DNA of 64,000 nt from IMG/VR virus record IMGVR_UViG_3300009184_000029, positions 1 through 64,000 of that record. One strand, given 5' to 3'. Below the pieces are notes generated by a model. That model searched no databases. It saw only the letters and a list, made by a program, of their open reading frames with translations, and was not told the DNA's origin. Position numbers and translations under genes: made by a program. Below, one piece after another: positions 3,864-61,401 of the stretch. Positions within the stretch are counted from its first letter, which is position 1; each line of letters begins with the position of its first letter.

Positions 3864-4970
3864 ATGAATAAATTAGACCAACAATACCAAACATTACTCC
3901 AAACCATTTTAGATTTTGGGGTGGAGAAGAAAGACCGAACTGGTACAGGAACCAAATCAATTTTTGGTTATACCATTCGTCATAATATGAAAGATGGTTT
4001 TCCACTCCTCACAACCAAGAAGATGGCTTGGAAAACTATGGTAACTGAATTACTATGGTTTTTAAGAGGTGACACCAACATCAAATACCTTGTTGATAAC
4101 AATTGTCATATTTGGGATGGTGACGCTTATAAGAGGTATTCGGTTATTGCTGGAGTATCAACCCAAGTTGAGACATTAACACAAGAAGAATTCATCAACA
4201 AAATCAAAACAGATGATGAGTTTGCTAAGAAGTGGGGTGAATTAGGTCCAATTTATGGTAAGCAATGGAGAAGGTGGCATACAGGTTGGGATGTAGTTGA
4301 AGATAAGAGTAAAGAGGCTGGCGTAAGAAGGATTGAGTATGGGATAGACCAAATCGCAAACCTAATCAACGACCTTAAAACAAATCCAGACTCAAGACGA
4401 TTAATGGTTAATGCTTGGAATGTAGGTGAGATAGACCAAATGGTTCTTCCACCTTGTCATTATGGATTTCAAGTTTATACAAGAGAGTTGAGTTTGGAGG
4501 AAAGATTATTATTGGCAGATAAAATTTGTAAAGAAATTAGACAAGATTTATATACATACTCTTTCAATAACCCAATATATACTGGCGGTATAGACCAAAG
4601 ACCAGATGATGTAGAAAGACATCATTTACTAAATGACTTAAACATTCCAACAAGAGCAATCTCTTTAATGTGGAATCAACGTTCAGTAGATACATTCTTG
4701 GGTTTACCATTCAACATTGCAAGTTATGGTTTGTTATTAACTATGATTGCAGATGAAATGAATATGGTACCTGATGAATTGATTGGTAACTTGGGTGACA
4801 CTCACATTTACCTAAATCATATTGAACAAGCAAAAGAACAGATTGGTAGAGAACCATTTCCACTTCCTAAAGTAATAGTTCAAGATGGAATATTCTGTAG
4901 TTCAGTCAGTGATGTTATTTTGGAAAACTACCAATCACAACCATCAATTAAGGCACCGTTAAGTAATTAA
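3864..4970 (+). CDS. thyA: Thymidylate synthase ThyA with two in-frame insertions
   Basis: DRTGTGT, FPLLTTKK, ELLWFLRG, LPPCH catalytic Cys, QRSVD-FLGLPFNIASY, GDTHIY-NH. Confidence 0.97.
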   Translation: MNKLDQQYQTLLQTILDFGVEKKDRTGTGTKSIFGYTIRHNMKDGFPLLTTKKMAWKTMVTELLWFLRGDTNIKYLVDNNCHIWDGDAYKRYSVIAGVSTQVETLTQEEFINKIKTDDEFAKKWGELGPIYGKQWRRWHTGWDVVEDKSKEAGVRRIEYGIDQIANLINDLKTNPDSRRLMVNAWNVGEIDQMVLPPCHYGFQVYTRELSLEERLLLADKICKEIRQDLYTYSFNNPIYTGGIDQRPDDVERHHLLNDLNIPTRAISLMWNQRSVDTFLGLPFNIASYGLLLTMIADEMNMVPDELIGNLGDTHIYLNHIEQAKEQIGREPFPLPKVIVQDGIFCSSVSDVILENYQSQPSIKAPLSN

Positions 4971-7646: not shown

Positions 7647-7820
7647 ATGAATAATGAAGAATTGGTGGAAGAACTATTATGGGCTTCTCATAAAAAGGGT
7701 ATTGGTAATGAAGTTTTAGATAAGGCGAAAGAGATTCAAACCTCAATAAGAATACCTTGGGTTGATTGTGTACAAAGGGCATACATGGAATTGGATGTGG
7801 ATAACTATGAAATGGATTGA
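7647..7820 (+). CDS. Small hypothetical protein MNNEELVEELLWASHKKG... (57 aa, not in ORF track)
   Basis: Manual translation; fills the gap between 7644 and glnII on the same strand. Confidence 0.55.
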   Translation: MNNEELVEELLWASHKKGIGNEVLDKAKEIQTSIRIPWVDCVQRAYMELDVDNYEMD

Positions 7821-7828
7821 TTAAAAAT

Positions 7829-8848
7829 ATGATATACAAATTAGAATATATTTGGTTAGACGGATATACACCTGAACCAAACATCAGAAGTAAAACAAAG
7901 ATTTATAATTCAGAATCTGAACCAAACTTAGAAGACTTACCAATTTGGAGTTTTGACGGTTCGTCAACTAAACAAGCTGAGGGTAAATACTCTGACTGTA
8001 TGTTGAAACCTGTTAAGATGATTCAGGACCCACAAAGAAAAAATGGTTATTTAGTTCTTTGTGAAGTATTAAATCCCGATTTGACACCTCACTCATCAAA
8101 TCACAGAGCTCAATTAAAAGATGACTCAAATACTTGGATTGGATTTGAACAGGAATATTTCATTTATGATGGAGAGTTACCTGTTGGACATAAAAAGGAA
8201 CTTATGAAACCACAAGGTGAGTATTATTGTGGGATTGGTAATGGTAATGTTTCAGGAAGAAACATTGTTGAACATCATTTGGATGTTTGTCTATCTTCAG
8301 GTCTTAATTTAACAGGTATAAATGCTGAGGTTGCACTTGGACAGTGGGAATTCCAAGTTATGGGAAAAGGAATATTAGATTCTTGTGACCAACTTATTCT
8401 TTGTCGTTTCTTATTACAACGATTAGGTGAGACTTACGGTGTGAAAATCAATTACCACCCAAAACCACTTCACGGAGATTGGAATGGTTCAGGACTACAC
8501 ACAAACTTCTCAACCAAGTATATGAGAGAAGTTGGAGGTAAACCTTACTTTGATATGTTATTCTTTGCAATGGAACAAAACCACTCAAAACACATTGAGA
8601 ACTACGGTTCAGATAATCAAATGAGATTAACTGGTGAACACGAAACACAATCTATTGATAAATTCAGTTGGGGTGTGAGTGACAGAGGAGCATCAATTAG
8701 AGTACCACAAACTACTGAGAAAAGTAATTGGAAGGGTTATATTGAAGATAGAAGACCTGCATCAAACGCCAATCCATATTTAATTGTGAAATCGATTTCA
8801 GAAACTGTTAATATGGTTGAGATGAATTTTAAAATGGTTAATGTGTAA
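7829..8848 (+). CDS. glnII: Glutamine synthetase type II
   Basis: KLEYIWLDG, IWSFDGSST, GFEQEY, GINAEVALGQWEFQ, DWNGSGLHTNFST, RLTGEHET, DRGASIRVP, EDRRPASN. Confidence 0.95.
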   Translation: MIYKLEYIWLDGYTPEPNIRSKTKIYNSESEPNLEDLPIWSFDGSSTKQAEGKYSDCMLKPVKMIQDPQRKNGYLVLCEVLNPDLTPHSSNHRAQLKDDSNTWIGFEQEYFIYDGELPVGHKKELMKPQGEYYCGIGNGNVSGRNIVEHHLDVCLSSGLNLTGINAEVALGQWEFQVMGKGILDSCDQLILCRFLLQRLGETYGVKINYHPKPLHGDWNGSGLHTNFSTKYMREVGGKPYFDMLFFAMEQNHSKHIENYGSDNQMRLTGEHETQSIDKFSWGVSDRGASIRVPQTTEKSNWKGYIEDRRPASNANPYLIVKSISETVNMVEMNFKMVNV

Positions 8849-10934: not shown

Positions 10935-12083
10935 ATGAGGCAAATTATAAAAAAGATACTAAAAGAAGAAGTTTTATTAAAGGAAGCAATTGAACATTTT
11001 GGTAGGTCATATTCTTATAAAGATATGAAATCAACAAGTTATAATGGTAATAATTATACTTGGTTTAATAAAATAAATGAGATTCCTTCTGAAGGTAAAT
11101 TATTTGATTTTAGTGATGATGCCTTTGAGCCAGAGATGGTAGTATTTACAAAGTTAGAAGGTAAGAATGGTAATTTTATTTTTAACAGCTCAGACTTAAA
11201 ACCAAATAAAAATGGGGATGGATTAAGTATACTGACTTCTAAATTAGTTAAAAAGTATCCTGATATATCTAAAAATTCTGAAAATATTGATTATGTTCAG
11301 GTTGCAATGAAGATTAAAAAGGACACTGCTAAAAGATACCAAAAGAAAATTAGACAAATATTTAGAGAAATATTCACACCATTAAATTTGTATGGTGTGT
11401 CAGATTCTTCACCTGACTGTGAAACAAATGAAGGAGTTATAAATTTCAAAGGAATTAATTATGGTAGAGATAATAAATTAGTTTCTAATTGGTCTGTATT
11501 AAACTATTTCGATACTAATTCAGGTGTTATAGAATACCTTCTTGAAAAATTTATGGAATCAGATGAAGGAAAACAAGTAGGTAAAGTAACAGATTTAAAT
11601 TTCGACACTACTGTTAATAAATTCGTTAAATGGTTGTATACTAATAAGGATAGTTTATTTAATCCTAAGTCAAAAGTTTTAGATGACCTTGAAGAAATAA
11701 ATTTAAGGACTATTAAAATAGGTGTACAAAATGAGCAAAGAGCAATCCCTGTTCTATTTAAATTACATAATATAGATGATAGTGGGATAACTCAGTATTG
11801 TCCTGGTTCAAAACAGGATACCTTATATGGAAGGGATTTTAAAATTAATACGGAAGAAAACTTACATTATCAAATAAAACCATTAAGAGGTTTGGTTAAA
11901 GTTGAGGGTGACAATTATATAATTAGAACATCTAATTTTAAGAAATACGGTAATACAGTCCAAAGGTTAATGTTCATCTCGGATAATAACTATTATGTCT
12001 TTAATAATGGAAACTACACTATAAATAACTATGGTGACGTTGTTACTTTTACTGAAAAGCCAATCGCTGAAGGTAAAATATAA
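10935..12083 (+). CDS. Leader-bearing protein (MRQIIKKILKEE) with possible C-terminal PD-(D/E)xK-like nuclease motif
   Basis: Leader motif; GVQNEQRA...QDTLYGRDF...YQIKP fits an E...D..G.D...QxK pattern. Confidence 0.5.
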   Translation: MRQIIKKILKEEVLLKEAIEHFGRSYSYKDMKSTSYNGNNYTWFNKINEIPSEGKLFDFSDDAFEPEMVVFTKLEGKNGNFIFNSSDLKPNKNGDGLSILTSKLVKKYPDISKNSENIDYVQVAMKIKKDTAKRYQKKIRQIFREIFTPLNLYGVSDSSPDCETNEGVINFKGINYGRDNKLVSNWSVLNYFDTNSGVIEYLLEKFMESDEGKQVGKVTDLNFDTTVNKFVKWLYTNKDSLFNPKSKVLDDLEEINLRTIKIGVQNEQRAIPVLFKLHNIDDSGITQYCPGSKQDTLYGRDFKINTEENLHYQIKPLRGLVKVEGDNYIIRTSNFKKYGNTVQRLMFISDNNYYVFNNGNYTINNYGDVVTFTEKPIAEGKI

Positions 12084-12103
12084 ATTCTCAAATATTTATT
12101 AGT

Positions 12104-12547
12104 ATGAGTCTGTTTAGCCAACTAAATAGAATTAAAGAGATAATGTTAGAATCTGAATCTAACGTTAAAATTTTTAAGTCTTTAAATTCTGACGGTGTTC
12201 ACTTCAAAGTTGGTGACAGTAATAAAACGTATGGAAGTTGTTCATTAAAGGATTTTGAAAATGCTTTAGAGTCTGAATTATTCCTTACATTTTTTAATAC
12301 TGACAAATTCAATAACAAAAATTCATACTATCTCGAAAATTTAGAGATAACCCCCAATTACAGGGGTAAGGGTTACTCCCATAAACTTTTAGATTCATGT
12401 AAACAGGAAAGCGTAAAAAACAAAAAAAAATTCATCATCATTATTGTTGATAATGATAATTTGGTGGCTAAGAACCTTTATGACAAACAAGGTTTTGTTA
12501 AGTCTGAAAGTAGTGGTAATAAATCATTATATTACTTAAAGACATAA
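12104..12547 (+). CDS. GNAT acetyltransferase with N-terminal leader (LNRIKEIMLES)
   Basis: YLENLEITPNYRGKGYSHKLL acetyl-CoA motif A; NLVAKNLYDKQGF motif B. Confidence 0.8.
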   Translation: MSLFSQLNRIKEIMLESESNVKIFKSLNSDGVHFKVGDSNKTYGSCSLKDFENALESELFLTFFNTDKFNNKNSYYLENLEITPNYRGKGYSHKLLDSCKQESVKNKKKFIIIIVDNDNLVAKNLYDKQGFVKSESSGNKSLYYLKT

Positions 12548-12567
12548 TCCTTTTTAAAAACAAAAAA

Positions 12568-12867
12568 ATGAAGACGGTAGGAAATGAAGTTGATAAGATA
12601 AGAAAAATAATGGGATTTATTTTAGAATCAAAAAAAATAGATAGACCTTATTCTGAAAAAAACAAAGTTAATTATAACAAAATGAAACATTCTGATGATT
12701 ATGTTGAACATCCTGATTTTAATCAAAAATTTGATTATATCGAGGAGATTGACCAAATTATAGAAAAATGGTCAGAGAAGTATAAAATGAGTATAGACTG
12801 TGATAACCCTAAAGGATTCTCCCAAAGAGCTCACTGTAAAGGTAAGAGTGGTAGAAGAAAAAAATAA
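12568..12867 (+). CDS. Leader-bearing small protein with CDNPKGFSQRAHC motif
   Basis: KIRKIMGFILES leader; C-terminal Cys/His motif recalled from phage head-associated proteins. Confidence 0.6.
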   Translation: MKTVGNEVDKIRKIMGFILESKKIDRPYSEKNKVNYNKMKHSDDYVEHPDFNQKFDYIEEIDQIIEKWSEKYKMSIDCDNPKGFSQRAHCKGKSGRRKK

Positions 12868-12872
12868 ATATT

Positions 12873-12900
12873 AAATCCCCCATTAATGGGGGATTTTTTT
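12873..12900. terminator. Bidirectional terminator
   Basis: AAATCCCCCA-TTAA-TGGGGGATTTTTTT between convergent genes. Confidence 0.85.
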
Positions 12901-12901
12901 A

Positions 12902-13150
12902 TTATAAACTATATACCTGTTTGTATTTGTTACCTAACAATTGTAAAGCTTTCTCGATTGCTGAGGACTTACTCTTCAACCCATTACCAACTATTTTCTT
13001 TGAATGGTAGATTATGAACTCACTAGAAACTACTTCACCTATTAACCATTTACTTTTACTTTCTTTTGCTGGTTTAAGAGTGTCTTTAATGTAGATGTCA
13101 TAAAATCCAACTTTACAAACATAACGACCTTTTGATGTTTTTTTTCCCAT
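12902..13150 (-). CDS. Hypothetical protein
   Basis: ORF with TATATTTG box upstream. Confidence 0.6.
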   Translation of the reverse strand: MGKKTSKGRYVCKVGFYDIYIKDTLKPAKESKSKWLIGEVVSSEFIIYHSKKIVGNGLKSKSSAIEKALQLLGNKYKQVYSL

Positions 13151-13179
13151 TTTTAAATGTTTTAAATATTAATAATGTT

Positions 13180-13187
13180 CAAATATA
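13180..13187 (-). promoter_or_regulatory. Bacteroidota sigma-A type -7 box (TATATTTG)
   Basis: Matches TAnnTTTG consensus upstream of 13150. Confidence 0.6.
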
Positions 13188-13226
13188 AATGTAAAAAATT
13201 AATATGTCTAATACTATTTATTAATA

Positions 13227-13592
13227 ATGAAAATTTTAATTGAATCATCGCAGATTGAGAGGTTAAAGAATTATATTACATCATATTTAGATATGATTTT
13301 TATTGCGGATGAACTATATTGGACTTATGACCACGATGAGGATGGTAATCCTGATGAAAATAAGTACATTTTCTATAGAGGAGATTTTTCAAATCAAGAC
13401 ATAGTTTTTGAGTGGATTGGTAAAGATTATTTTGGTTCAGAAGAAATTAAAAAAAATGCCCCAATAGTGTTAATAAACACTGAACAAGTGATTGATTTAG
13501 AATCTATGTTTGGAGATTTTTGGAAACCTGTATTTAAAGAATGGTTTAAGGAGAATTTTAATTTAGATGTTAAAACTGTAAATAAAGAATGA
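13227..13592 (+). CDS. Paralogue-family protein with MKILIESSQ leader
   Basis: Leader class A; ends ...FKEWFKENFNLDVKTV, similar to family C-terminal motif. Confidence 0.65.
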   Translation: MKILIESSQIERLKNYITSYLDMIFIADELYWTYDHDEDGNPDENKYIFYRGDFSNQDIVFEWIGKDYFGSEEIKKNAPIVLINTEQVIDLESMFGDFWKPVFKEWFKENFNLDVKTVNKE

Positions 13593-13631
13593 AATTGTAT
13601 TAAATTTACATGAACCCAACATTTACTAAAA

Positions 13632-13955
13632 ATGATTTTAACTACTGAAATATTAAATAAAATACTCAATTCGGATTTCATCAAAAATATCTATCCGATG
13701 ATTGACCATATTAAATCTCATATTATGTGGGATGGTGATGAAACATATCCGATGTATGATATTACTTTGAAAATATATGTGAATGACCCTGATATGACGG
13801 CTTCCAACATGTATGACAAAGGATTGGACCCACATTATTTAATTGATAAGTATATGATTTTATTGATTAAATTTTTAGGTTCGGCAAGAAATGAAATTTC
13901 TCAAATATATGTTAGTGTTATAGGTCCTGATGGTGAAATAATTTATGGTATATGA
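13632..13955 (+). CDS. Hypothetical protein
   Basis: ORF; IYPMIDHI and DPHYLID motifs. Confidence 0.6.
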   Translation: MILTTEILNKILNSDFIKNIYPMIDHIKSHIMWDGDETYPMYDITLKIYVNDPDMTASNMYDKGLDPHYLIDKYMILLIKFLGSARNEISQIYVSVIGPDGEIIYGI

Positions 13956-13959
13956 TAAT

Positions 13960-14523
13960 ATGAAAGATTTAATAAAAAAAATATTAAAAGAAGAGACGGA
14001 TATTATGGACTCTTTTACTTATTTTGAAACGTCAAAGGGTTCAAAGTATATTATAAATGACAAAGGACAATTAAGAAGATGGAAGTCTTATCACGAAAAC
14101 ACATCAGGTGAAGATATGGGATTACACTCTTGGAGTGATTTATCATTCTTTGTTGACCCATCTTATTATAGTAGTGTAAGTTCTTTTGAACAATTAAATA
14201 CTAACAAAGGATACAAAGTTGCTATAAGTAAAGATGCTGAAGGTAAAATGTTTTACATGATTTTTGATAACAATCAATGGAGACCTGCGAAATGGGAAGA
14301 TGCGTTCCCTACATATGTGAAAAACAATCCTGAATTAAAAAATAAGGTATTAAGTTGGAGATACGTAAGAGAACCTAAAATTGGGTATAATGTTGTTGAT
14401 GTCTCGTTCAAAAAACAAGGTTCAACACAACTATCAAGTTTTCACATAGGTAATACCGTATCAAGAATTGAGGATAGAATACCTGATGATGAAAGAAATT
14501 TATTTACTGGTAAACGTTCTTAA
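13960..14523 (+). CDS. Leader-bearing protein (MKDLIKKILKEE)
   Basis: Leader class B; start reassigned to the leader Met. Confidence 0.65.
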   Translation: MKDLIKKILKEETDIMDSFTYFETSKGSKYIINDKGQLRRWKSYHENTSGEDMGLHSWSDLSFFVDPSYYSSVSSFEQLNTNKGYKVAISKDAEGKMFYMIFDNNQWRPAKWEDAFPTYVKNNPELKNKVLSWRYVREPKIGYNVVDVSFKKQGSTQLSSFHIGNTVSRIEDRIPDDERNLFTGKRS

Positions 14524-14842
14524 CTTTAATGTCACTACGTAAATAATCAGGTGCCGCCCAAATATCAGATACTAAAATTTCTTTACTATTTAATAACCAT
14601 TTCATTATTAAATCTAAACAGTAAGTTTTTTTGATTGAGAAAAACTTACAGATTTCATTAACTAACATATAGTTAACTTCACAAAAACCATCTTCTTTAT
14701 CTATACATATTTGTGAAAATTCATCACCAACTGAATTTACAAAATATATTTTATTTGGACTATCTAAAGTAATTAAATCTTGGTTATTTAAGTATTTTAA
14801 AATAAACGATTCTATTTGTGATTCTTTAATTATTATTCTCAT
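14504..14842 (-). CDS. Paralogue-family protein (MRIIIKESQ)
   Basis: Aligns by eye with 21969, 24100, 24409 (YLNNQD...YFVNS.GDEF.QI...FFS). Confidence 0.75.
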   Translation of the reverse strand: MRIIIKESQIESFILKYLNNQDLITLDSPNKIYFVNSVGDEFSQICIDKEDGFCEVNYMLVNEICKFFSIKKTYCLDLIMKWLLNSKEILVSDIWAAPDYLRSDIKVKNVYQ

Positions 14843-14843
14843 A

Positions 14844-15245
14844 TTATACAAAGACTACACTTTTTATACCCATAACATTATTTTCGGGGAAATATTGACT
14901 ATAAATATCCTGTATTATGTACTTACCATGTATTGACCATAATGGGTGAGGGAGAAATGACTCAAATAATTTATCTAATTCACGACTATAATAAATTTCA
15001 CCATTACGACTTATCTTATCTAAATATCTGTATGGTACGAACAATATTAATATTTTACCATCTGAACCAAGTAGAGCAATTTTATTGTTATCATCTTCAT
15101 TATATGATTTAATCATATTTGAGATTAAAGGAATCAGTTTATTACTTAGTTTAGAGTACTGATGCTCATATTCCTTATCACGCCAATCCCTCTCAATTTT
15201 TTCAGAAATTAATTTATATTGTGATTCGGTGATGATGTATTTCAT
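14844..15245 (-). CDS. Leader-bearing protein (MKYIITESQ)
   Basis: Leader class A; TATTTATA 5 nt upstream on minus strand. Confidence 0.7.
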   Translation of the reverse strand: MKYIITESQYKLISEKIERDWRDKEYEHQYSKLSNKLIPLISNMIKSYNEDDNNKIALLGSDGKILILFVPYRYLDKISRNGEIYYSRELDKLFESFLPHPLWSIHGKYIIQDIYSQYFPENNVMGIKSVVFV

Positions 15246-15264
15246 ATGATTATAAATACAAGTA

Positions 15265-15272
15265 TATTTATA
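15265..15272 (+). promoter_or_regulatory. Putative late promoter box TATTTATA (divergent partner at 15251-15258 on minus strand)
   Basis: Each box lies 5 nt from the ATG of its gene (15278 plus, 15245 minus). Confidence 0.6.
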
Positions 15273-15277
15273 ATAGT

Positions 15278-15892
15278 ATGAACCTAAAGGAATCCATAAG
15301 AAGAATATTAAAAGAAGAAAGGAATGTTAAAAACACATTAGTGAAACTTATTGATGAGTTTGGTATTGAACAAGCCTCCAAAATTACCGCGATTTCTATC
15401 ACAAAATTAGTTCAACTATCTGATGTAAAAATTAATAATGTAATTGCTAATAAACTATTAGTTGAAAATTTAAACAAGGGTAAATTAAAAGATACCTATA
15501 AACAATTCAAGATAGAATCAAGTATAAATGATGTTTTTTATTGGCAAGGTGAATTACAAACAGGACACTATACTGATAAATACACTGAATCAATTACAGC
15601 AATGGCGACACCATTTTGGGATGGTGAAGATTATACTCCTGTTGAGATTGAGTGGTTTACTCTATTGGACAGAAGTAAACCAAATGAAGTGAAGATGGTT
15701 GTTGAGACAGAGGGTTATGGAAGTTTTTACCAAACATTTAAAGATAAAACAAGTTTTGATAGTGTAGAAGAGTTATTTAATTGGTATGAAAAAGTTTATT
15801 TACCTGGTGTATATAACATAATAATGCACTTATTACCTGAAGTGCATATTTTTATTGATGAAAAATTAGATGAGGATAGAAGAGACAATTAA
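15278..15892 (+). CDS. Leader-bearing protein (MNLKESIRRILKEE)
   Basis: Leader class B; body resembles 24774. Confidence 0.7.
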   Translation: MNLKESIRRILKEERNVKNTLVKLIDEFGIEQASKITAISITKLVQLSDVKINNVIANKLLVENLNKGKLKDTYKQFKIESSINDVFYWQGELQTGHYTDKYTESITAMATPFWDGEDYTPVEIEWFTLLDRSKPNEVKMVVETEGYGSFYQTFKDKTSFDSVEELFNWYEKVYLPGVYNIIMHLLPEVHIFIDEKLDEDRRDN

Positions 15893-16316
15893 AAGAATAT
15901 TAAGAGAGGAAACTCAGATACCTTCACCGATTAGAAGAAGGGTGTCAAATTCGGATATCGAAGAAGCGTTCCTTATTTCATTAGATAGAATAGACGATGG
16001 ACGAAAATATAGTAAAATGTCAGTAATGAAAAATGTATCATTACAGACATTTGCCAAAATGGTAATTGATGATATGATTTCGGATTTAGAACAAGAATAT
16101 TTTAATGATGAGAACAGGATTTATTTTGATAATGACGAAACATATCACGAAGAAATTAGAGTACCACTTATGAACTATTTTAGTGATAGAATTAAGAAAA
16201 GATATGGCTCAAAAGACGAAAAAATTGTGTGTCAGGAATGCGGATGGTCGTGGAATTTATCTGATGGAGGAGATGACCCATATACTTGTCATCAGTGTTA
16301 CCCCGAAAACATGTAA
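15870..16316 (+). CDS. Leader-bearing protein with C-terminal zinc ribbon (CQECG...CHQC)
   Basis: IKRILREE leader; IRRRVS motif shared with 19597; CxxC-x14-CxxC. Confidence 0.7.
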   Translation: MRIEETIKRILREETQIPSPIRRRVSNSDIEEAFLISLDRIDDGRKYSKMSVMKNVSLQTFAKMVIDDMISDLEQEYFNDENRIYFDNDETYHEEIRVPLMNYFSDRIKKRYGSKDEKIVCQECGWSWNLSDGGDDPYTCHQCYPENM

Positions 16317-16400
16317 ATTAATATGAAACTACAAGATAGGATTATACAAATTTACAATAAAAGAGAGTGGACTTAGGACCGCTGTAGTTTAGGCTACATT

Positions 16401-16433
16401 AACCCCATTGAATTCGCTACTCAGTGGGGTTTT
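16401..16433 (+). terminator. Terminator-like hairpin, part of a larger structured intergenic element
   Basis: ACCCCATTGA / TCAGTGGGGT stem, 9-nt loop, followed by TTT. Confidence 0.65.
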
Positions 16434-16445
16434 CATTTGAACAAG

Positions 16446-16453
16446 TATTTATA
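16446..16453 (+). promoter_or_regulatory. Putative late promoter box TATTTATA heading the cassette operon
   Basis: 5 nt before ATG 16459. Confidence 0.6.
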
Positions 16454-16458
16454 ATAAA

Positions 16459-17349
16459 ATGAATCTACAAGAGAATATACAAAGAATTAAAGAAATGATG
16501 GGACTCATTACCGAAGAAAAAAAAGATAAAACCATTGTTCTTTTGGATGGTACCTCGTCTGCTGGTAAATCACATACACTTAAACATTTAAAGGCCGTTC
16601 CGTATTACGAAGCGAATGACCCAAACCAATTGGTTGTTATTGCAACTGATGATTTTAGTGGAACAGGTGAAGGTGAAGGTAAAGAAGGTGAAGAAAGAAG
16701 ATTAAAATTGGACCACCCCAATATAAGACAATGGGCGAAGGAAAATGAAGATGCTGGAGTTGTATCAGGAAAATATCGTAAAGATGGTAAAGATGTACCT
16801 AAAAATCCATACGAGAAAGAATATATTGAAGGGACTGACCCAAGATTATGGTATGTGGCTCAAGAAATTAAAACAGGTCCTTGGAAAAAAATTGTAATAG
16901 ACGATATTGGTAAAGGAGTATTACAATACTTACCTGGTGTTAAATTAAAATATATTCTGTTACACACTCCATTACATGTTCTTTTAAAGAATGTCTACGA
17001 AAGAAATGAAAGGGCGAAAAATGATAAGAACTTCAAAAATGATGATAGGGATATTAAAATGGTGTTAGACCAATACTCGGAGAAATATGAGGCAACAAAG
17101 TCCAAACCTGATATTACTAAAGGGGACCCAAAAACAATATTAACTAAGAGAGGTATTACAGATTTACTTGAGACAAATGGTGTGAAGAATAAACACATAG
17201 ATGAGTTTTTAAATAGTATAAATTTAACTAAAGATGGAGATTACTACATCAAAGTTAGGGATTCATATTTGACACCTGAAACACAATTAATTAATGTTGA
17301 TAGTAAAAGAACTGTCTATTTAAAAGATATTGATAAAGAATTAAAATGA
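16459..17349 (+). CDS. Leader-bearing P-loop kinase (chloramphenicol phosphotransferase-like)
   Basis: MNLQENIQRIKEMMGLITEE leader; LLDGTSSAGKS Walker A of CPT-like type; IVIDD; lid RNER. Confidence 0.7.
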   Translation: MNLQENIQRIKEMMGLITEEKKDKTIVLLDGTSSAGKSHTLKHLKAVPYYEANDPNQLVVIATDDFSGTGEGEGKEGEERRLKLDHPNIRQWAKENEDAGVVSGKYRKDGKDVPKNPYEKEYIEGTDPRLWYVAQEIKTGPWKKIVIDDIGKGVLQYLPGVKLKYILLHTPLHVLLKNVYERNERAKNDKNFKNDDRDIKMVLDQYSEKYEATKSKPDITKGDPKTILTKRGITDLLETNGVKNKHIDEFLNSINLTKDGDYYIKVRDSYLTPETQLINVDSKRTVYLKDIDKELK

Positions 17350-17981
17350 GTTTAATACAAACCATAAAAAAAATATTAAGGGAAGAGGTCAATGAGGCCT
17401 ATTTAAAACCAAGTGAAAAATCCGAGAAATTTATTTTGGATAGATTGAATGCTATGGCTTTAGGTGCTGAAATATACCACCTTGAAAGTTATAAAACAAG
17501 ACATGATTTTGAGTTTTGTAAAAATGGAAAACAAATAATGAATCTTGCATTGTTCTTTGAAGAAACTGACGATAACACCCCAACGTCTGAAAGAAAATTT
17601 GAATCTTCAACATTATCAATACAAGAAGATTTTGTTGGTGGGATATTAAAGACTTTTCCTGTTAGAAGAAATTATCTTTATTACATGATTGAAGAATGGT
17701 TTGAGGATACTTTTTTAAGTGAAATCTCAAATATGATAGGTAGAAATGATATATCTGTTGAAGAATTATCATTTAATGATAGGACATATGCGTGTGTCCC
17801 ACCAATTAAAGAAGTACCTGAAGGAGTTACTCAAGACGAGATGATTAAGGTTATTATGAACAATACACTATGGCGTAAAAAAGATTTATTAGCGTTAGAA
17901 GAAAGAGAACCTGGGTCTATAGAATTTTTTTATTTACAAAAACTTCGTAATAATGAGGTTAATAGATTAGATAATAGATAA
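17346..17981 (+). CDS. Leader-bearing hypothetical protein (IKKILREEVNE)
   Basis: Leader class B; overlap with previous gene. Confidence 0.65.
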   Translation: MSLIQTIKKILREEVNEAYLKPSEKSEKFILDRLNAMALGAEIYHLESYKTRHDFEFCKNGKQIMNLALFFEETDDNTPTSERKFESSTLSIQEDFVGGILKTFPVRRNYLYYMIEEWFEDTFLSEISNMIGRNDISVEELSFNDRTYACVPPIKEVPEGVTQDEMIKVIMNNTLWRKKDLLALEEREPGSIEFFYLQKLRNNEVNRLDNR

Positions 17982-17982
17982 T

Positions 17983-18396
17983 ATGAACCTACAGGAACAC
18001 ATAAGAAGAGTATTAAGGGAAGAACTATATTCTCCATCAGGAGATGAATATACACCTGGCAAATTTGTTGTTCATAAATCAAATCCTATATGGAGAGAGA
18101 ACATAGAACTTACAGGTTTACAAACGTATGTGGGTGATTGTTACCAACAACATGTGGGAGGAGATGTGGAATGTAAACCATCAATATTTGCAACAGACTC
18201 ATTAAATAAAAAACAAATGTTTGATTCAACCTATGATGATGATATATGGGTTATTGATACAGAATGTGCGGGAGTTACTTGGTATAAAGATAAACATTTT
18301 GAGGGTGGAGATTACAAACACCATATAGTTACATTTGATGACATATCGACTGATTGTTTAAGATTAATACATAAGGGAACAGGGAAAAGTAATTAA
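17983..18396 (+). CDS. Leader-bearing protein, possible ADP-ribosyltransferase fold
   Basis: MNLQEHIRRVLREE leader; VVHKS...IELTGL...SIFAT...WVIDT pattern. Confidence 0.5.
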   Translation: MNLQEHIRRVLREELYSPSGDEYTPGKFVVHKSNPIWRENIELTGLQTYVGDCYQQHVGGDVECKPSIFATDSLNKKQMFDSTYDDDIWVIDTECAGVTWYKDKHFEGGDYKHHIVTFDDISTDCLRLIHKGTGKSN

Positions 18397-18397
18397 T

Positions 18398-18841
18398 ATG
18401 AATCTACAAGAACAAATATCAAGAATACAATCAATGATGGGGGTTATTAATGAAGGATTACACGACACATCATGGGAAAATGATGAGGGCGATAAAGTTA
18501 CTTTAATAGACTTACTAAATGCAACCAAAGACATACCCGTTAAGAAAATTTCTGTGAACAAGATTAAGTCCAAGTTATTAACGTGGGGTGATGATGAAAA
18601 AGAAATTGCCAAAATAGAAAAGTCTAACTTAAAATATCCGATATTAATATTTGTTGATGACAATAATAAATTCATTTCAATTATAGATGGTCATCATAGA
18701 GGGCAAAAAGCCGTAAAACACAAATTAAAAAAAATCAAAGCAAAGTTAATACCAATTAACTCTTTGCCCAAAGATATAAAAAAAGTATTTAATCGCATGA
18801 ATCAAAATGAACCTACAAGAAGAAATATCAAGAATACATGA
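18398..18841 (+). CDS. Leader-bearing ParB/Srx-like domain protein
   Basis: MNLQEQISRIQSMMGVINE leader; KYPILI...IIDGHHR motif. Confidence 0.7.
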   Translation: MNLQEQISRIQSMMGVINEGLHDTSWENDEGDKVTLIDLLNATKDIPVKKISVNKIKSKLLTWGDDEKEIAKIEKSNLKYPILIFVDDNNKFISIIDGHHRGQKAVKHKLKKIKAKLIPINSLPKDIKKVFNRMNQNEPTRRNIKNT

Positions 18842-19328
18842 GATGATGGGAGTTATATCTGAAAAGTTAGAAGATATACAAGGAACACCATTATACCATA
18901 AGACCTCAACAAGTAGAGGTATTGATATTATTAATACGGATTCATTAAGGGGGGTTTTACCATCAGGTGATTATTTAGGTAACGACAAGAGATTAGCAAA
19001 CACCAAAACACAAACAGCAATATCATTCACAAGAGATAAAAACTGGCAACCAAATAATACAATTGGTGTGGGACTTGATTCATCATTGGAAGATACGGGA
19101 ATAACATTTGTGGTGGATAGAGATAAGTTAAAGACAAAGTATAAGATAGAACCATTCAATTATCACGGAATTGACCCTGATTCAGAATATAAAGAAAAGT
19201 TTAATGAATTAGAAGACCGTGTAATGACAAATGAAATATATCCACTACACAAATATGTTATAGATATAATTTACACAGGGGATAATCCTGAAGTACAAGA
19301 AATAATAGATAGTTATTTAAATAGATGA
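18807..19328 (+). CDS. Leader-bearing protein, possible ADP-ribosyltransferase fold
   Basis: MNLQEEISRIHEMMGVISE leader; PLYHKTS...AISFTRD...ELEDRV pattern. Confidence 0.55.
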   Translation: MNLQEEISRIHEMMGVISEKLEDIQGTPLYHKTSTSRGIDIINTDSLRGVLPSGDYLGNDKRLANTKTQTAISFTRDKNWQPNNTIGVGLDSSLEDTGITFVVDRDKLKTKYKIEPFNYHGIDPDSEYKEKFNELEDRVMTNEIYPLHKYVIDIIYTGDNPEVQEIIDSYLNR

Positions 19329-19600
19329 ACTTACAAGAACAAATATCAAGAATACAATCAATGATGAGGGTTATTAATGAAAACTCGGTAGAAGATAAAA
19401 TTAATGACTTATCAGAAAAGGAAAGAACATTCCTTAAAGATTTCGGAACTGACCCCACATTAAGAAAACTAATGACATCTCAAGAGATTAAGACGGCAAA
19501 CAAATTAGTTAAGAAAGGTATGATGGAAAAAGGGACATCTGATGATAATAAATCAAATGTAATTTATTATGTTGACTCATTTGTATATAAAAGACTATGA
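19325..19600 (+). CDS. Leader-bearing small protein (possible winged helix)
   Basis: Leader nearly identical to 18398; LSEKERTFL...ANKLVKKGMM...YYV. Confidence 0.6.
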   Translation: MNLQEQISRIQSMMRVINENSVEDKINDLSEKERTFLKDFGTDPTLRKLMTSQEIKTANKLVKKGMMEKGTSDDNKSNVIYYVDSFVYKRL

Positions 19601-20598
19601 ACCTACAGGAGCACATAAGAAGAGTATTAAGAGAGGAATTATCCCCAAGGATAAGAAGAAGACTTTCTAATGATGAAATGGAAAATGAATTTCTTGAATC
19701 TTTTGAAGGTGCTTATCGTCTTACAAAAAACAGAAAGGTTTTAAGTTCACATTTTTTAGATGAGTTAGTCTACACAACAATAACCTTTATGATGGATGGG
19801 GTGCATTGGAGATTTGTTAGCACATTACCTGAAGATGAATTTTGGTATGATGATATACATCAAGAATTAGAAAATCATTATAAAGACAGAATTATACAGA
19901 TGTATAATGAAAAACAAGGAATTAATGAATCAATATTAAGGGAAGAAACTAAGTTACCTGTTTATATTAGAAGAAGGGTAAGCCCTGGTGACCTTGAGTG
20001 GTTGATTAGGGATGTTAAAATTTCTTTAAGCAGGGGAAAGAATAAAAGTGATGCCTTATATGATGCAATTCAAAATCTTATTTCATCAAACAGAGAACTA
20101 TTAAAAGATTATGATATGTTCCAAGATGTGTACGCATTTGACGAACCACTAATTAGATATATCAATTCAAAATTGGACGAGGAACCGTTAAATGAATCAA
20201 TATTAAGGGAAGAAACCTCACGTCAAAATAACTTAAAAGATATACTCTCAGATGTTGGTGTTTATAATACTTCAAAAATGGTAGGAGGTATTAAAAATCT
20301 GTATAAATTACTTGGTTTTGTTGGGACTCAAGAGGAAATGATTTTAATTGTTAACACATTAATTAAACATGATATTCCGATTATAGAAAATATATGTGAT
20401 TTTAAAATTGTACCAACTCAAAACTCATTAAAACTATATGTGGAAATACCAAAATATTATCCTATTCATCCTGATGATTATTACCCGAACAGACAAAAAG
20501 TATTACAAGCGAGAGATAACATAAGTACCATGATAAATAAAATGGGAAATGGGTTAGTAAAAGGACATGTTGTAGAAGTTAGTATAGGTAAATGTTAA
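19597..20598 (+). CDS. Leader-bearing tripartite protein with two internal NESILREET motifs
   Basis: 26-bp exact DNA repeat AATGAATCAATATTAAGGGAAGAAAC at 19924 and 20191. Confidence 0.7.
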   Translation: MNLQEHIRRVLREELSPRIRRRLSNDEMENEFLESFEGAYRLTKNRKVLSSHFLDELVYTTITFMMDGVHWRFVSTLPEDEFWYDDIHQELENHYKDRIIQMYNEKQGINESILREETKLPVYIRRRVSPGDLEWLIRDVKISLSRGKNKSDALYDAIQNLISSNRELLKDYDMFQDVYAFDEPLIRYINSKLDEEPLNESILREETSRQNNLKDILSDVGVYNTSKMVGGIKNLYKLLGFVGTQEEMILIVNTLIKHDIPIIENICDFKIVPTQNSLKLYVEIPKYYPIHPDDYYPNRQKVLQARDNISTMINKMGNGLVKGHVVEVSIGKC

Positions 20599-21296
20599 AA
20601 CAAAGAATATTAATGGAAGGGATTGAGGAAATTGGTAATTTTACCAAATTAGAAAAAGTAATAATGGAATTTATCAATCGACAAATTCCTAAAGAAAAGT
20701 TACCTGAAAACTTTCATGGTATTGCTGTTGATGTATATAACACTCAGTACGGAAAGAGTTGTAAAATAACTTTTTTAATGAAAAAACCTTTTTCAGAAAA
20801 AGACTCTGATGATTTACATGATATGAGTCTAAATGCCAAAAATTTAGTTAAGAGTTTTTTTAACAAAAAGTTTCCATATGGTGTAACTACAGGGACATCG
20901 ACTATTAAACACTACAAAGAAACAAAAGATTGGTACGATAGTCAAAAGGACATTAAAGAAATGAATCTACGACAAACTGTAAAAAGAGTATTAAGTGAAA
21001 CGACCAAAGAAGTATTGTGGTTAAGAAGGAGACTACATTCACATGAGGTAATGAGAGATTTGAAAGAAACGGTTATTGGTAACATAGAATTCTTGGATGG
21101 TCCTTGTGGATATGATACAAGTAAGGAATGGTTTGATTCCATAATGAAAACGTCTGTGGAAAACTTTATCAGTCACTGGGAAGAATTGTATGATGCTGAT
21201 GATATGGTCACCTTAGATGATTTTGTATATGAGATTATTAATGATGAATACGGGGATATGATTAGAAAGGCATATAAAAATAGAATATGTGATTAA
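20592..21296 (+). CDS. Fusion ORF with an internal in-frame leader MNLRQTVKRVLSET at 20961
   Basis: Leader class B Met in frame mid-ORF. Confidence 0.6.
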   Translation: MLKQRILMEGIEEIGNFTKLEKVIMEFINRQIPKEKLPENFHGIAVDVYNTQYGKSCKITFLMKKPFSEKDSDDLHDMSLNAKNLVKSFFNKKFPYGVTTGTSTIKHYKETKDWYDSQKDIKEMNLRQTVKRVLSETTKEVLWLRRRLHSHEVMRDLKETVIGNIEFLDGPCGYDTSKEWFDSIMKTSVENFISHWEELYDADDMVTLDDFVYEIINDEYGDMIRKAYKNRICD

Positions 21297-22587: not shown

Positions 22588-22689
22588 TATATATAAATAC
22601 AAAGATAGGGACAAAGTTGAACTATATATATTGGGTTAATAATTTCATAAGAATATGATAATATGGTTTGTTCTTTACTTTCTATACTT

Positions 22690-23400
22690 ATGGAAATGGA
22701 ACTATCAAAGTTATTAACCATTGTTATACCTTGTAAGAACGAGGGGATAACTATCAATCAAACTTTATCGATATTAAATTTCCAAAATGGTATTGATGGT
22801 GTTAAGGTTATTGTTTCCGATTCTTCGGATGATGGAACAACATATCATTTGGAGAACAGAAACAGGGACTATTTCAATCTTGACATCATTCAGGGTGGGT
22901 TACCTAGCAAAGCAAGAAATAATGGAGCAGAACGAGCTGAAACTCCGTTTGTATTGTTTATGGACGCCGACATGATGATACTTGATACAAACTTACTTCA
23001 GGAGTGTATGGAGATGATGAGAAGAGAAAGGTTAGATTTGTTGACAACAAAGGTAAGAACAACAAACGGAAAATACAATTATGTGTTCAGAACATTTGAT
23101 TTGATTCAGGGGATAACAAGATATATCACACCATTTTGTTTAGGTGGGTTTATGTTAATGAGAAAGTCAACATTCATAACACTAAACGGATTTGATGAAG
23201 AGGCACAGGTTGCTGAGGATTACTTACTATCAAAACAGATAAAGACAAATAGATTTAAGGTATATAGAAAAACCATATTCACATTACCAAGAAGGTTTGA
23301 GAGTAAGGGATTATGGTATATGACAAAGTTAATGATAATGTCATTCCTTAACAGAAATAACAAGGAGTTTTTCTCCGACCACAATTCATATTGGAAATGA
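22690..23400 (+). CDS. Family 2 glycosyltransferase
   Basis: TIVIPCKNE, VIVSDSSDD, KARNNGA, VLFMDAD, GGFML, AED. Confidence 0.9.
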   Translation: MEMELSKLLTIVIPCKNEGITINQTLSILNFQNGIDGVKVIVSDSSDDGTTYHLENRNRDYFNLDIIQGGLPSKARNNGAERAETPFVLFMDADMMILDTNLLQECMEMMRRERLDLLTTKVRTTNGKYNYVFRTFDLIQGITRYITPFCLGGFMLMRKSTFITLNGFDEEAQVAEDYLLSKQIKTNRFKVYRKTIFTLPRRFESKGLWYMTKLMIMSFLNRNNKEFFSDHNSYWK

Positions 23401-24107
23401 GATACAGAACAATTATAATGAGTGATTTACATCTTGGCGCAAAACAATCACAGACGGACAAGATAATAAAGTTCTTGGAAGAAAACCAAACGGACAAGTT
23501 AATACTAAACGGAGATATCATAGATGGTTGGGCACTCAAAGGTAGTGGTAAGTGGACAAAGGATTGCACCAAGATATTCAGGAAGTTTATGAAGATGTCG
23601 GAGAAGGATACAAAGGTAATTTATATAAGGGGAAACCACGATGACTTCCTAAAAGATTTCATTCCGTTTAAGTTAAACAATATAAGGATTGTAAGGAAGT
23701 ATGTACATGAAGGAATGGACGGAAGAACATACTTTTGTTTTCACGGGGATGTATTGGATTTCGTTATAATGGAAGCAAGATGGTTGGCAGTAATCGGTGG
23801 ATGGTCATATGATATTGTCATTAAGTTTAATACTCTATACAACAAAATAAGAAAGTGGTTTAACTTACCATATCATTCACTGGCAAATACAATAAAACAA
23901 TCTGTTAAAGGGGCGATTAACTTTGTATCTGATTTCGAAGAAAACGCGAAAGGTTTAACAAAACAGAAGGGATATGATGTTGCGGTGTGTGGACATATTC
24001 ATCACCCGAAGTTAGAGAATGACTATATGAATTCAGGAGACTTTTGTGAGAACTCTACATGTCTTGTAGAAGATTATAATGGGGAGTGGAAAATAATTAC
24101 TATATAA
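23391..24107 (+). CDS. UDP-2,3-diacylglucosamine hydrolase-like metallophosphoesterase (LpxH-like)
   Basis: SDLHLG, LNGDIIDGW, RGNHDD, FHGD, CGHIHHP, YMNSGD. Confidence 0.85.
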   Translation: MEMRYRTIIMSDLHLGAKQSQTDKIIKFLEENQTDKLILNGDIIDGWALKGSGKWTKDCTKIFRKFMKMSEKDTKVIYIRGNHDDFLKDFIPFKLNNIRIVRKYVHEGMDGRTYFCFHGDVLDFVIMEARWLAVIGGWSYDIVIKFNTLYNKIRKWFNLPYHSLANTIKQSVKGAINFVSDFEENAKGLTKQKGYDVAVCGHIHHPKLENDYMNSGDFCENSTCLVEDYNGEWKIITI

Positions 24108-24741: not shown

Positions 24742-24760
24742 ATGATAATAAATACAATTA

Positions 24761-24768
24761 TATTTATA
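24761..24768 (+). promoter_or_regulatory. Putative late promoter box TATTTATA
   Basis: 5 nt before ATG 24774. Confidence 0.6.
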
Positions 24769-24773
24769 ATATT

Positions 24774-32686: not shown

Positions 32687-33112
32687 ATGAAAAAAGTTGT
32701 TAGACTAACAGAATCGGATTTAATTAAATTGGTTAAAAGAGTTATTAGAGAAGAAGAGGGTGCAAATGACCCAGGTGACCCATCCTACAGCCGTTTGGCT
32801 GAAGAACTTTCAAATAAGGTAAGAAATTTATTTTTACCAACCTCTAAATTTTGGGCAGATTATCAAGGAACTATCAATGATGATGAGGAAGGGGCTGTAG
32901 CAGCTTTTGAGTCTTGGTGGAATACAAATGTAGCACCTCATATGAGTAAATTTAGTGGAGATAATGCTAAAAGTTTGGATACGGCATTTAAACAAATTAA
33001 AGAGGCTCTTTTAGGTGATACGTCAAATGATACAGTTAGTTGGGTTATTTATGTCAAAACTATGGATGGTAGGATAGACCAACGTCATTTTGAGGTTGAT
33101 ACCGACTTCTAA
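32687..33112 (+). CDS. Leader-bearing protein (MKKVVRLTESDL...VIREEE)
   Basis: Leader C. Confidence 0.7.
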   Translation: MKKVVRLTESDLIKLVKRVIREEEGANDPGDPSYSRLAEELSNKVRNLFLPTSKFWADYQGTINDDEEGAVAAFESWWNTNVAPHMSKFSGDNAKSLDTAFKQIKEALLGDTSNDTVSWVIYVKTMDGRIDQRHFEVDTDF

Positions 33113-56829: not shown

Positions 56830-56906
56830 GCCCCCATAGCTCAGCTGGATAGAGCAACAACCTTCTAAGTTGTGGGTCACACGTTCGAATCGTGTTGGGG
56901 GTACCA
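56830..56906 (+). tRNA. tRNA-Arg(UCU)
   Basis: Acceptor GCCCCCA/TGGGGGT, D-arm AGCTCAGCTGGATAGAGC, anticodon arm ACAAC-CTTCTAA-GTTGT, TTCGAAT loop, encoded CCA. Confidence 0.97.
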
Positions 56907-61374: not shown

Positions 61375-61401
61375 AAAAAGGGGAAGTTATTCCCCTTTTT
61401 T
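61373..61401. terminator. Bidirectional terminator
   Basis: AAAAAAAGGGGAA-GTTA-TTCCCCTTTTTT. Confidence 0.8.

Follow-up and report, generated by a model that had tools for sequence, protein, structure and literature searches.

Two ADP-ribosyltransferase-fold proteins and a probable ParB-like protein among the leader-tagged genes of a freshwater jumbo phage: candidates for injected cargo

Do three small neighbouring genes of an uncultured phage encode proteins that travel in the virion and act on nucleotides in the host? The question is raised by positions 17983 to 19328 of IMG/VR record IMGVR_UViG_3300009184_000029, within the first 64,000 nucleotides of that record (the whole stretch analysed, hereafter the window). 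The original prediction for this locus proposed two ADP-ribosyltransferase (ART)-fold cargo proteins flanking a ParB-like cargo, all acting on nicotinamide adenine dinucleotide (NAD+) or nucleoside triphosphates (NTPs). The three open reading frames (ORFs) lie on the plus strand, as do all their motifs given below. ORF A (17983..18396, 137 aa) has a leader followed by a minimal ART-fold domain like the NAD+ lobe of Tpt1/KptA. ORF B (18398..18841, 147 aa) has a leader at residues 1-19, MNLQEQISRIQSMMGVINE, and then a probable ParB/Srx-like domain. ORF C (18807..19328, 173 aa) has a leader at residues 1-19, MNLQEEISRIHEMMGVISE, a disordered linker and a DarT-like ART-fold domain at residues 25-173. 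The ART folds of ORFs A and C, originally called from the sequence, are borne out by AlphaFold2 models and three kinds of fold search. Injected cargo acting on NAD+ or NTPs in the host is the best available explanation of the locus, a reading by analogy whose chances we regard as evenly poised.

The three ORFs are real genes under purifying selection. Ungapped codon comparison with related loci gave ratios of nonsynonymous to synonymous substitution rates (dN/dS) of 0.09-0.18 for ORF A, about 0.1 for ORF B and 0.13-0.31 for ORF C. Metagenomic homologues number 175 for ORF A, 103 for ORF C and more than 497 for ORF B; a profile search of 1.84 billion representatives with ORF B returned 569 clusters, and ORF C was found at 41 viral loci. 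ORFs A and B are separated by one base, and the 3' end of ORF B overlaps ORF C by 35 nt. The strings quoted in the original prediction were all found in the translations where it had placed them: FVVHKS, IELTGL, SIFATD and WVIDTE in ORF A, IIDGHHR in ORF B, and LYHKTS, ISFTRD and ELEDRV in ORF C. The record, which is linear (222,829 bp, GC content about 30%, CheckV completeness about 76%), comes from an uncultured freshwater T4-like jumbo phage; the same DNA is found chiefly in freshwater metagenomes (21 studies). Searches of cultured phages with blastn and tblastn yielded no relative of the region, nor of ORFs B and C, and only the capsid protein was matched, at 43-44% identity, in Microcystis phage Mel-JY01 and Flavobacterium 'immuto' phages.

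The AlphaFold2 models of ORFs A and C were built on 55 and 58 homologues, respectively. The ORF C model has a mean predicted local distance difference test score (pLDDT) of 81.8, and all five models agree at pLDDT of at least 78. Foldseek places DarT first (E 0.012, probability 1.0), and other ARTs follow. VIA-align superimposes 141 of the about 148 domain residues on DarT with Z 9.5-9.6, the C lobe of Tpt1 being next at Z 8.7. Matches in BFVD are uncharacterised jumbo-phage proteins (E about 4e-7), and the viral structural matches include Bacillus phages SP-15, G and PBS1, Dickeya phage JA11 and Agrobacterium phage Atu_ph07. An exhaustive scan of 48,161 PDB chains, run with ORF C and with ORF A, gave almost only ART-superfamily entries among the top 50 of each.

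ARTs typically carry a His or Arg on strand 1, a Tyr or an S-x-S/T on strand 2, and a catalytic Glu, often within Q/E-x-E, on strand 5. The ORF C model places conserved residues on all three strands. Motif I, Y30-H31-K-T33 (18894..18905), lies on strand 1 (residues 28-33), with Y30, H31 and T33 invariant in 81 sequences; motif II, S73-F-T75-R76 (19023..19034), lies on strand 2 (72-75), with S73 and R76 invariant and T75 kept in 80 of the 81; motif III, E134-L-E136-D-R138 (19206..19220), contributes an E-x-E that opens strand 5 (136-139), with E134, E136 and R138 invariant. These residues hold down to 37% identity. As modelled, the set H / S-x-T / E-x-E reads as an H-Y-E/R-S-E hybrid. Relatives differ in the length and sequence of the loop between strands 4 and 5, the part of ARTs that recognises substrate. 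A search of the 222-kb record for the DarT family PF14487 itself, at E up to 10, gave no match, and none was obtained in a Pfam scan of 58 family members.

The ART superfamily fold is built on a split beta-sheet of six strands that holds the NAD+ cleft. The model of ORF A has a mean pLDDT of 82 and six strands, and four of the five models agree at pLDDT of at least 78. Its ART-fold domain comprises residues 18-137 (18034..18393). Foldseek places Tpt1/KptA first (E 3.7e-5), followed by pertussis S1, PARP15, Scabin and cholera toxin, and VIA-align gives Z 10.3 against Tpt1/KptA, with a root-mean-square deviation of 2.1-2.8 over 87-92 residues and 14-21% identity. The match is confined to about residues 84-182 of the Tpt1/KptA chain, which constitute the NAD+ lobe; the RNA lobe is absent. 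In viral structure libraries ORF A resembles viral clusters, one of them a fusion with a GNAT domain. Among 79 relatives R38, G45-L46, F69 (18187-18189), D87, W100, D103 (18289-18291) and T117 are invariant, and H31 (18073-18075) and S33 are kept in 78. In the model H31-x-S33 lies on strand 1, F69 on strand 2, and strand 5 opens with H114 and not with Glu. The late acidic residue that had been read from WVIDT does not hold up, since position 92 is occupied by D or N and belongs to strand 3, whereas ARTs carry the catalytic Glu on another strand. ORF A as a protein stabilised by zinc or disulfides was considered and dropped, its four cysteines not being kept in distant relatives.

Tpt1 has no catalytic Glu and binds NAD+ via the C lobe alone; three of the four residues of its catalytic tetrad lie in the RNA lobe (PMC8464070). 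ORF A is therefore not a Tpt1, since it is without that lobe. PF01885 (PTS_2-RNA) had no match in the genome. By analogy with the Tpt1 lobe, ORF A may bind NAD+ or ADP-ribose (ADPR), or may transfer ADP-ribose to a phosphate-type nucleophile. Of the two ART-fold proteins, ORF C is on its model the likeliest to be an active enzyme.

This difference bears on an alternative that we hold to be unlikely, in which one or both ART-fold proteins, and above all ORF A, are not transferases at all. They would be binders, sponges for ADP-ribose or cyclic ADPR-type signals, or decoys, and would block NAD+-based host immunity by sequestering such molecules. Such a role would agree with the His in place of Glu at the opening of strand 5 in ORF A, and with the likeness of this protein to no more of Tpt1 than its ligand-binding lobe, which suffices for the binding of NAD+, ADPR and ADP (PMC8464070). 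Injected sponges are moreover known in jumbo phages, for example Tad1 of phiKZ (PMC13282480). However, ORF C keeps the full H / S-x-T / E-x-E set typical of active enzymes, and ORF A may still be catalytic because Tpt1 chemistry needs no catalytic Glu. The invariant R38, D87 and D103 of ORF A fit a transferase and a binder alike.

The two families are orphans at the level of sequence. ORFs A, B and C have no significant match in Pfam, NCBIfam or PADLOC, though each has hundreds of metagenomic relatives. ORFs A and C had no match in PHROGs, PADLOC or PDB profile searches, and neither matches PF18760 (ART-PolyVal). An hhalign comparison of family A with family C matched the leader alone, and the two are therefore not detectable paralogues. 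ORFs A and C thus represent two sequence-orphan families that are new to the ART superfamily, which is itself a known superfamily. That sequence profiles find no ART family could also mean that the fold matches are generic alpha/beta resemblance or a modelling artefact and that the functions have nothing to do with NAD+; the VIA-align Z of 9-10 stands moderately above the background of 7-8 quoted for the tool, and the Foldseek E of ORF C is just 0.012. We consider this highly improbable. With either model, nearly all of the top 50 matches from two independent search engines and the exhaustive scan are ART entries, the invariant residues sit on the three strands that bear ART motifs, and models agree at pLDDT of at least 78 in four of five cases for ORF A and in five of five for ORF C. 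With the exhaustive scans, which are independent of Foldseek, agreeing with the other searches, the ART-fold claim is well supported.

ORF B is probably ParB/Srx-like, judging from its sequence. It carries the motif D97-G98-H99-H100-R101 (18686..18700), with a conserved Arg, which is invariant in 33 aligned relatives and which we take to be the signature of the ParB/Srx superfamily. A DGHHR-type motif is described as a signature of this superfamily (PMC5512222). Nearest neighbours by ESM-Atlas features point the same way, with ParB_N (including sulfiredoxin) accounting for 14 of the 30 nearest named clusters (0.94). Profile matches to the clan agree with the ParB/Srx call, though all of them are below threshold. 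ParBc_2 matches ORF B at E 0.015 (15.8 bits vs the cut-off of 23.6); in the family DUF1015 is matched by 12 of 33 members and ParBc_2 by 11 of 33, all below cut-off; PF02195 gives no match to ORF B even at E 10. Among the PHROGs, phrog_17560 (function unknown) is matched at 1e-10 and phrog_1033 (ParB-like) at 9e-4, and a PDB profile search gave one spurious match and nothing else.

The ORF B domain is about 115 residues long and is found as a building block of many unrelated multidomain phage proteins, which elsewhere also carry SET, Pol-beta nucleotidyltransferase or PAP2 domains; one relative, P0428, has ART-PolyVal (PF18760) in the same chain. The C-terminal tail of ORF B, NQNEPTRRNIKNT (18807-18841), is the ORF C leader DNA read in another frame. 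Most ORF B homologues end about 12 residues earlier, and some have a conserved Cys-rich tail, CWKGYTQKGMKTMFGKRYPNCVKK, instead.

What the three proteins share is the N terminus, which reads MNLQE-x-I-x-R-(I/V) and continues with LREE or with xxMMG(V/L)I-x-E. The leader of ORF A, MNLQEHIRRVLREE (residues 1-14, 17983..18024), is a predicted helix with L-Q-E5 and L-R-E13; in the model the helix covers residues 3-15 at low pLDDT and is followed by a linker. More generally, AlphaFold2 predicts the leaders of A and C as a helix with a low-confidence linker after it. Such leaders are found on at least 22 small ORFs, nearly all between 10.9 and 34.5 kb (10935-34457); one further leader ORF lies at 80676-81185, inside the structural region, and none was found elsewhere in the 222 kb. 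A second leader type starts with MKYLITESQ. The two types are halves of one longer leader, because a composite, MKKVVRLTESDLIKLVKRVIREEE, is present at 32687. In all 22 leader ORFs [LIM]xE occupies fixed positions, its Glu being E5, E13 or E19 in one type and E7 in the other.

The leader is modular. Leader types are exchanged between orthologues, and orthologues of ORF A have the MMG-type leader instead. Leader DNA is near-identical between non-homologous genes, at 39 of 42 nt for ORF A and ORF 19597 and at 54 of 57 nt in another comparison; elsewhere, synonymous differences between leader copies show that selection acts on the peptide. Nothing relevant to the leader strings was found in the literature.

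A possible function of the leader is suggested by the T4-type head module that the genome encodes, with Portal_T4 (2e-76), Peptidase_S77/gp21 (2.6e-25; 73910-74659 of the genome), Gp23 (2e-72) and an acidic scaffold-like protein. The Gp23-type capsid protein (76576-78378 of the genome; L006:12576-14378) has 600 aa, compared with 521 in T4; the extra residues fall between the conserved N-terminal segment and the Gp23 core, which suggests an inserted domain. When the protein is aligned to T4 gp23, HLINE60↓AATT falls on LTE65↓AEIG (arrows mark the known or putative cleavage position), and LTE65↓A is the known T4 gp23 cleavage site. The maturation site of the capsid protein, as inferred from this alignment, would be I-N-E60↓A. 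The I-N-E form is common to this site, to the end of the ORF B leader (VINE↓G) and to the end of the ORF 19325 leader.

In T4 the prohead protease gp21 cleaves after L/I-x-E (PMC9026906), and a 10-residue capsid-targeting sequence (CTS) loads the internal proteins (PMC3012670). Alt, an ART, sheds a short propeptide, and in T-even phages diverse proteins stand behind CTS-like leaders (PMC9026906, PMC3012670). The T4 leaders read MKTYQEFIAE in internal proteins (IPs) IPII and IPIII, MKTFKEF...ITE in IPI and MELITE in Alt.

The same motif separates modules in polyprotein versions of these genes. Related locus L033 encodes a 1057-aa chain (L033:599-3772) of about eight modules with [ILM]NES linkers, in which the ORF A domain lies between ELNE↓N and GIME↓S. 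In this polyprotein [LIMV]NE[SN] was observed 5 times vs 0.28 expected, and none of 2000 shuffles reached 5. Elsewhere a Vsr-like (Vsr/DUF559-like) motif is joined to the ORF C domain via GGINE↓S (L051:4600-6507, L052:4561-6507), SET is combined with the ORF C domain (L035:5680-6483), and extra modules accompany the ORF B domain (L017:4892-6004; L020:5174-6004). The linker pattern, as read from these sequences, fits prohead-protease processing. In the window, ORFs 19597-20598 and 20592-21296 look by sequence like multi-module proteins assembled from leader-tagged units: the former (333 aa) has two internal leader-like linkers, GINESILREET and PLNESILREET, and the latter an internal MNLRQTVKRVLSETT.

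We propose that the at least 22 shuffled small genes would each encode an amphipathic leader, a flexible linker and an unrelated enzyme-like domain. The leader would act like the CTS or propeptide of T4 and take the protein into the prohead scaffolding core, where the gp21-like protease would cut after the Glu of [L/I/M]-x-E, that is LRE13 in ORF A, INE19 in ORF B and ISE19 in ORF C. The mature domains would then exit the head along with the DNA. ORF C could be a NAD+-dependent mono-ADP-ribosyltransferase that modifies a host macromolecule at the start of infection; its E-x-E hints at protein arginine as the target, as for T4 Alt, and its DarT-like scaffold hints at a nucleic-acid base. ORF A would be a Tpt1-type NAD+ lobe standing alone; it probably binds NAD+ or ADP-ribose and would act either through this binding or, like Tpt1, by passing ADP-ribose to a phosphate-type nucleophile. 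ORF B could be a ParB/Srx-type protein that binds or hydrolyses NTPs, or a nickase. When the scaffold-like protein (75041-76546) was predicted in complex with the ORF C leader, the score was 0.00, which counts neither for nor against the proposal.

The leader genes could also be explained by their surroundings. The three genes are part of a dense run of ten plus-strand ORFs (15278..21296) that abut or overlap by a few bases; nine start with the type-A leader and the tenth has an internal copy. Upstream of the run is a 32-nt inverted-repeat intergenic cassette (15246..15277), which divides a type-B leader gene on the minus strand from a type-A leader gene on the plus strand and has a copy at 24742-24773. 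In the first cassette TATAAATA lies 20 nt upstream of both divergent starts, 15278 (plus) and 15245 (minus); taking both cassettes together, TATAAATA or AATAAATA is found 20 nt upstream of each start codon. TATAAATA lies 20 nt before three leader-operon starts, and within 60 nt upstream of starts it was counted 20 times vs a mean of 8.1 (maximum 16) for 40 permuted 8-mers. By analogy, the cassette resembles a late promoter of T4 and also the mobile promoter/stem-loop cassettes found in plastic regions of T4-type genomes. The idea that TATAAATA proves late transcription was dropped, since it is absent before the head genes though enriched upstream of starts.

From these observations it could be argued that A, B and C are ordinary cytoplasmic takeover enzymes, made after infection like ModA and ModB of T4 and never packaged, and that the shared helix stems from cassette shuffling or serves oligomerisation or regulated turnover. 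We find this account doubtful, while recognising what speaks for it. The small genes form a plastic region adjoining genes for thymidylate synthase, a glycosyltransferase and a phosphoesterase, their order is not kept among relatives, the divergent promoter cassette is present twice, at 15.25 kb and again at 24.75 kb, and the leader DNA is near-identical between non-homologous genes, as given above; the genome also encodes a ClpB/ClpC-like ATPase (61387-63432). However, an unpackaged role leaves unexplained the leader-like inter-domain linkers that end in [ILM]-N-E↓S in the polyproteins, the match of this linker motif to the inferred maturation site of the capsid protein, and the fixed [LIM]xE positions in all 22 leaders.

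Several observations count against the proposal that the proteins are injected enzymes acting on NAD+ or NTPs. As to injection, the leader genes sit among early-looking small genes and nucleotide-metabolism genes and not in the head module, a position in which the ip and alt genes of T4 itself likewise lie outside the head module. Exact TATAAATA was not found before the portal, scaffold and capsid genes and so does not establish late expression; the shared 5' gene ends may stem from a mobile promoter cassette. The motif [L/I]-x-E is short and common in Glu-rich helices, and in the L033 polyprotein [LIM]xE in general shows no enrichment (25 observed vs 19.9 expected). As to enzymatic function, no ART profile match was obtained for ORFs A and C in Pfam, with single proteins or with all family members, or in NCBIfam. 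The motif assignments in both ORFs come from DSSP strand register only. ORF A, as modelled, is without the canonical catalytic Glu and may for this reason not be a classical transferase. No match to the antitoxin domains that accompany DarT, the macrodomain of DarG (PF01661) or NADAR (PF08719), was found in the 222.8 kb, an absence that is not absolute because the record is about 76% complete. Finally, the order A-B-C is not conserved, and the three proteins therefore need not act together.

The last point also qualifies the flanking arrangement in the original prediction. It is present at this locus; as a recurrent order it is not, adjacency of A with B or of A with C being found in 2 of 28 related ORF A loci, and ORF C is solitary in several relatives. 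A functional A-B-C operon was dropped as a candidate for the same lack of conserved adjacency.

Should the leader prove to be a capsid-targeting propeptide, the small T4 set of internal proteins and Alt would have its counterpart here in a large modular repertoire of injected effectors with polyprotein variants. Modules seen so far may include the two unrecognised ART families, ParB/Srx, SET, GNAT, a P-loop kinase-like protein and a Vsr-like nuclease. We tentatively speculate, as a possibility and not as our expectation, that the lineage carries a combinatorial arsenal of injected effectors. It would hold dozens of enzyme modules behind exchangeable capsid-targeting propeptides, deployed interchangeably as single genes or as polyproteins cut by the prohead protease at [I/L/M]-N-E↓S; ORF C would act offensively as a DarT-like enzyme whose H / S-x-T-R / E-x-E site is new, and ORF A would be a Glu-less, minimal enzyme of the Tpt1 type that ADP-ribosylates a phosphate, possibly at the 5'-phosphate ends of nucleic acids. 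If the leader is such a propeptide, its combination with [L/I/M]-x-E would offer a sequence rule for injected effectors, and with it candidate anti-defence proteins, in uncultured jumbo phages. According to a 2026 review, Tad1 is the only anti-defence protein described in jumbo phages (PMC13282480). The leader could also be a loading tag for protein delivery by related phages.

Two further leader-tagged proteins of the run have features of their own. The 296-aa protein at 16459-17349 has a Walker A motif, GTSSAGKSHT, with weak AAA_18 and chloramphenicol-phosphotransferase-like matches, and is possibly a P-loop kinase cargo. The 148-aa protein at 15870-16316 has a C-terminal CxxC...CxxC zinc-ribbon-like motif, CQECGWSWNLSDGGDDPYTCHQC; a similar motif is present in a leader protein of relative L003 (8034-7768). 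In the same relative, minus-strand ORFs inside 12445-14973 and 11503-12438 show repeated FHPILNGIFN-like strings opposite two large genes, which indicates repetitive coding sequence in the plus-strand genes. Among the auxiliary genes of the window are those for a 368-aa thymidylate synthase that contains an insertion (3864-4970), a homologue of GlnII-like glutamine synthetase that scores below the family cut-off (7817-8848), a family-2 glycosyltransferase (22663-23400), a calcineurin-like phosphoesterase (23391-24107), the ClpB/ClpC-like double AAA+ ATPase (61387-63432) and a tRNA-Arg(TCT) (56830-56906).

Compared with known systems, ORF A shares with Tpt1/KptA the H-x-(S/T) of strand 1, a following helix with G-L and the lack of a catalytic Glu. 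It differs on strand 2, where Tpt1/KptA has His and ORF A has Phe. DarT (DarT1/DarT2) is the toxin of DarTG systems and ADP-ribosylates bases of single-stranded DNA. DarT, like ORF C, has a His on strand 1 and a Glu at strand 5, and in DarT1, too, the motif-II position of H-Y-E is occupied by Ser (PMC11543638). In contrast to ORF C with its E-x-E and its domain of about 148 residues, DarT of DarTG has a single Glu and a domain of about 200-220 residues, and at the position of the NAD-loop Arg of DarT (R51/R52) no invariant Arg was identified in ORF C. DarTG is a toxin-antitoxin pair, whereas ORF C is phage-borne and leader-tagged and not half of such a pair. ORF B shares the I-I-D-G-H-H-R signature with its Arg with the ParB/Srx superfamily (ParB_N, ParBc_2, DUF1015, DdrB-like ParB), though no match reaches a curated threshold; unlike ParB systems, it has neither a ParA partner nor a DNA-binding helix-turn-helix domain.

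ART and ParB/Srx domains recur in the polyvalent proteins of phages and conjugative elements, whose effectors are predicted to enter the host with the DNA (PMC5512222, Iyer et al. 2017). Relatives L033, L051, L035 and P0428 are like these in having several effector domains per chain, whereas in the window ORFs A, B and C are separate leader-tagged ORFs. Polyvalent proteins have a built-in zincin-like peptidase; here we propose that the prohead protease acts at the [ILM]-x-E linkers instead.

The closest parallel is with the internal proteins and Alt of T4. Both phages have short N-terminal leaders ending in [L/I]-x-E, here MNLQEHI... and MKYLITE, and both have a T4-type portal, a gp21-like protease and a gp23-like capsid protein. 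As in the internal proteins of T-even phages, diverse and fast-shuffling domains stand behind a conserved leader (PMC3012670, PMC9026906). T4 has four leader genes and this phage at least 22; the leaders here, at 14-24 residues, are longer than the T4 CTS and come as two half-types and a composite, and relatives of this phage, unlike T4, encode polyprotein versions. Alt is an ART of the R-S-E type, whereas the ART-fold proteins described here are not of that type and have no detectable sequence similarity to Alt. By this analogy, the setting of ORFs A, B and C resembles the internal-protein and Alt system of T4 in an enlarged and modular form.

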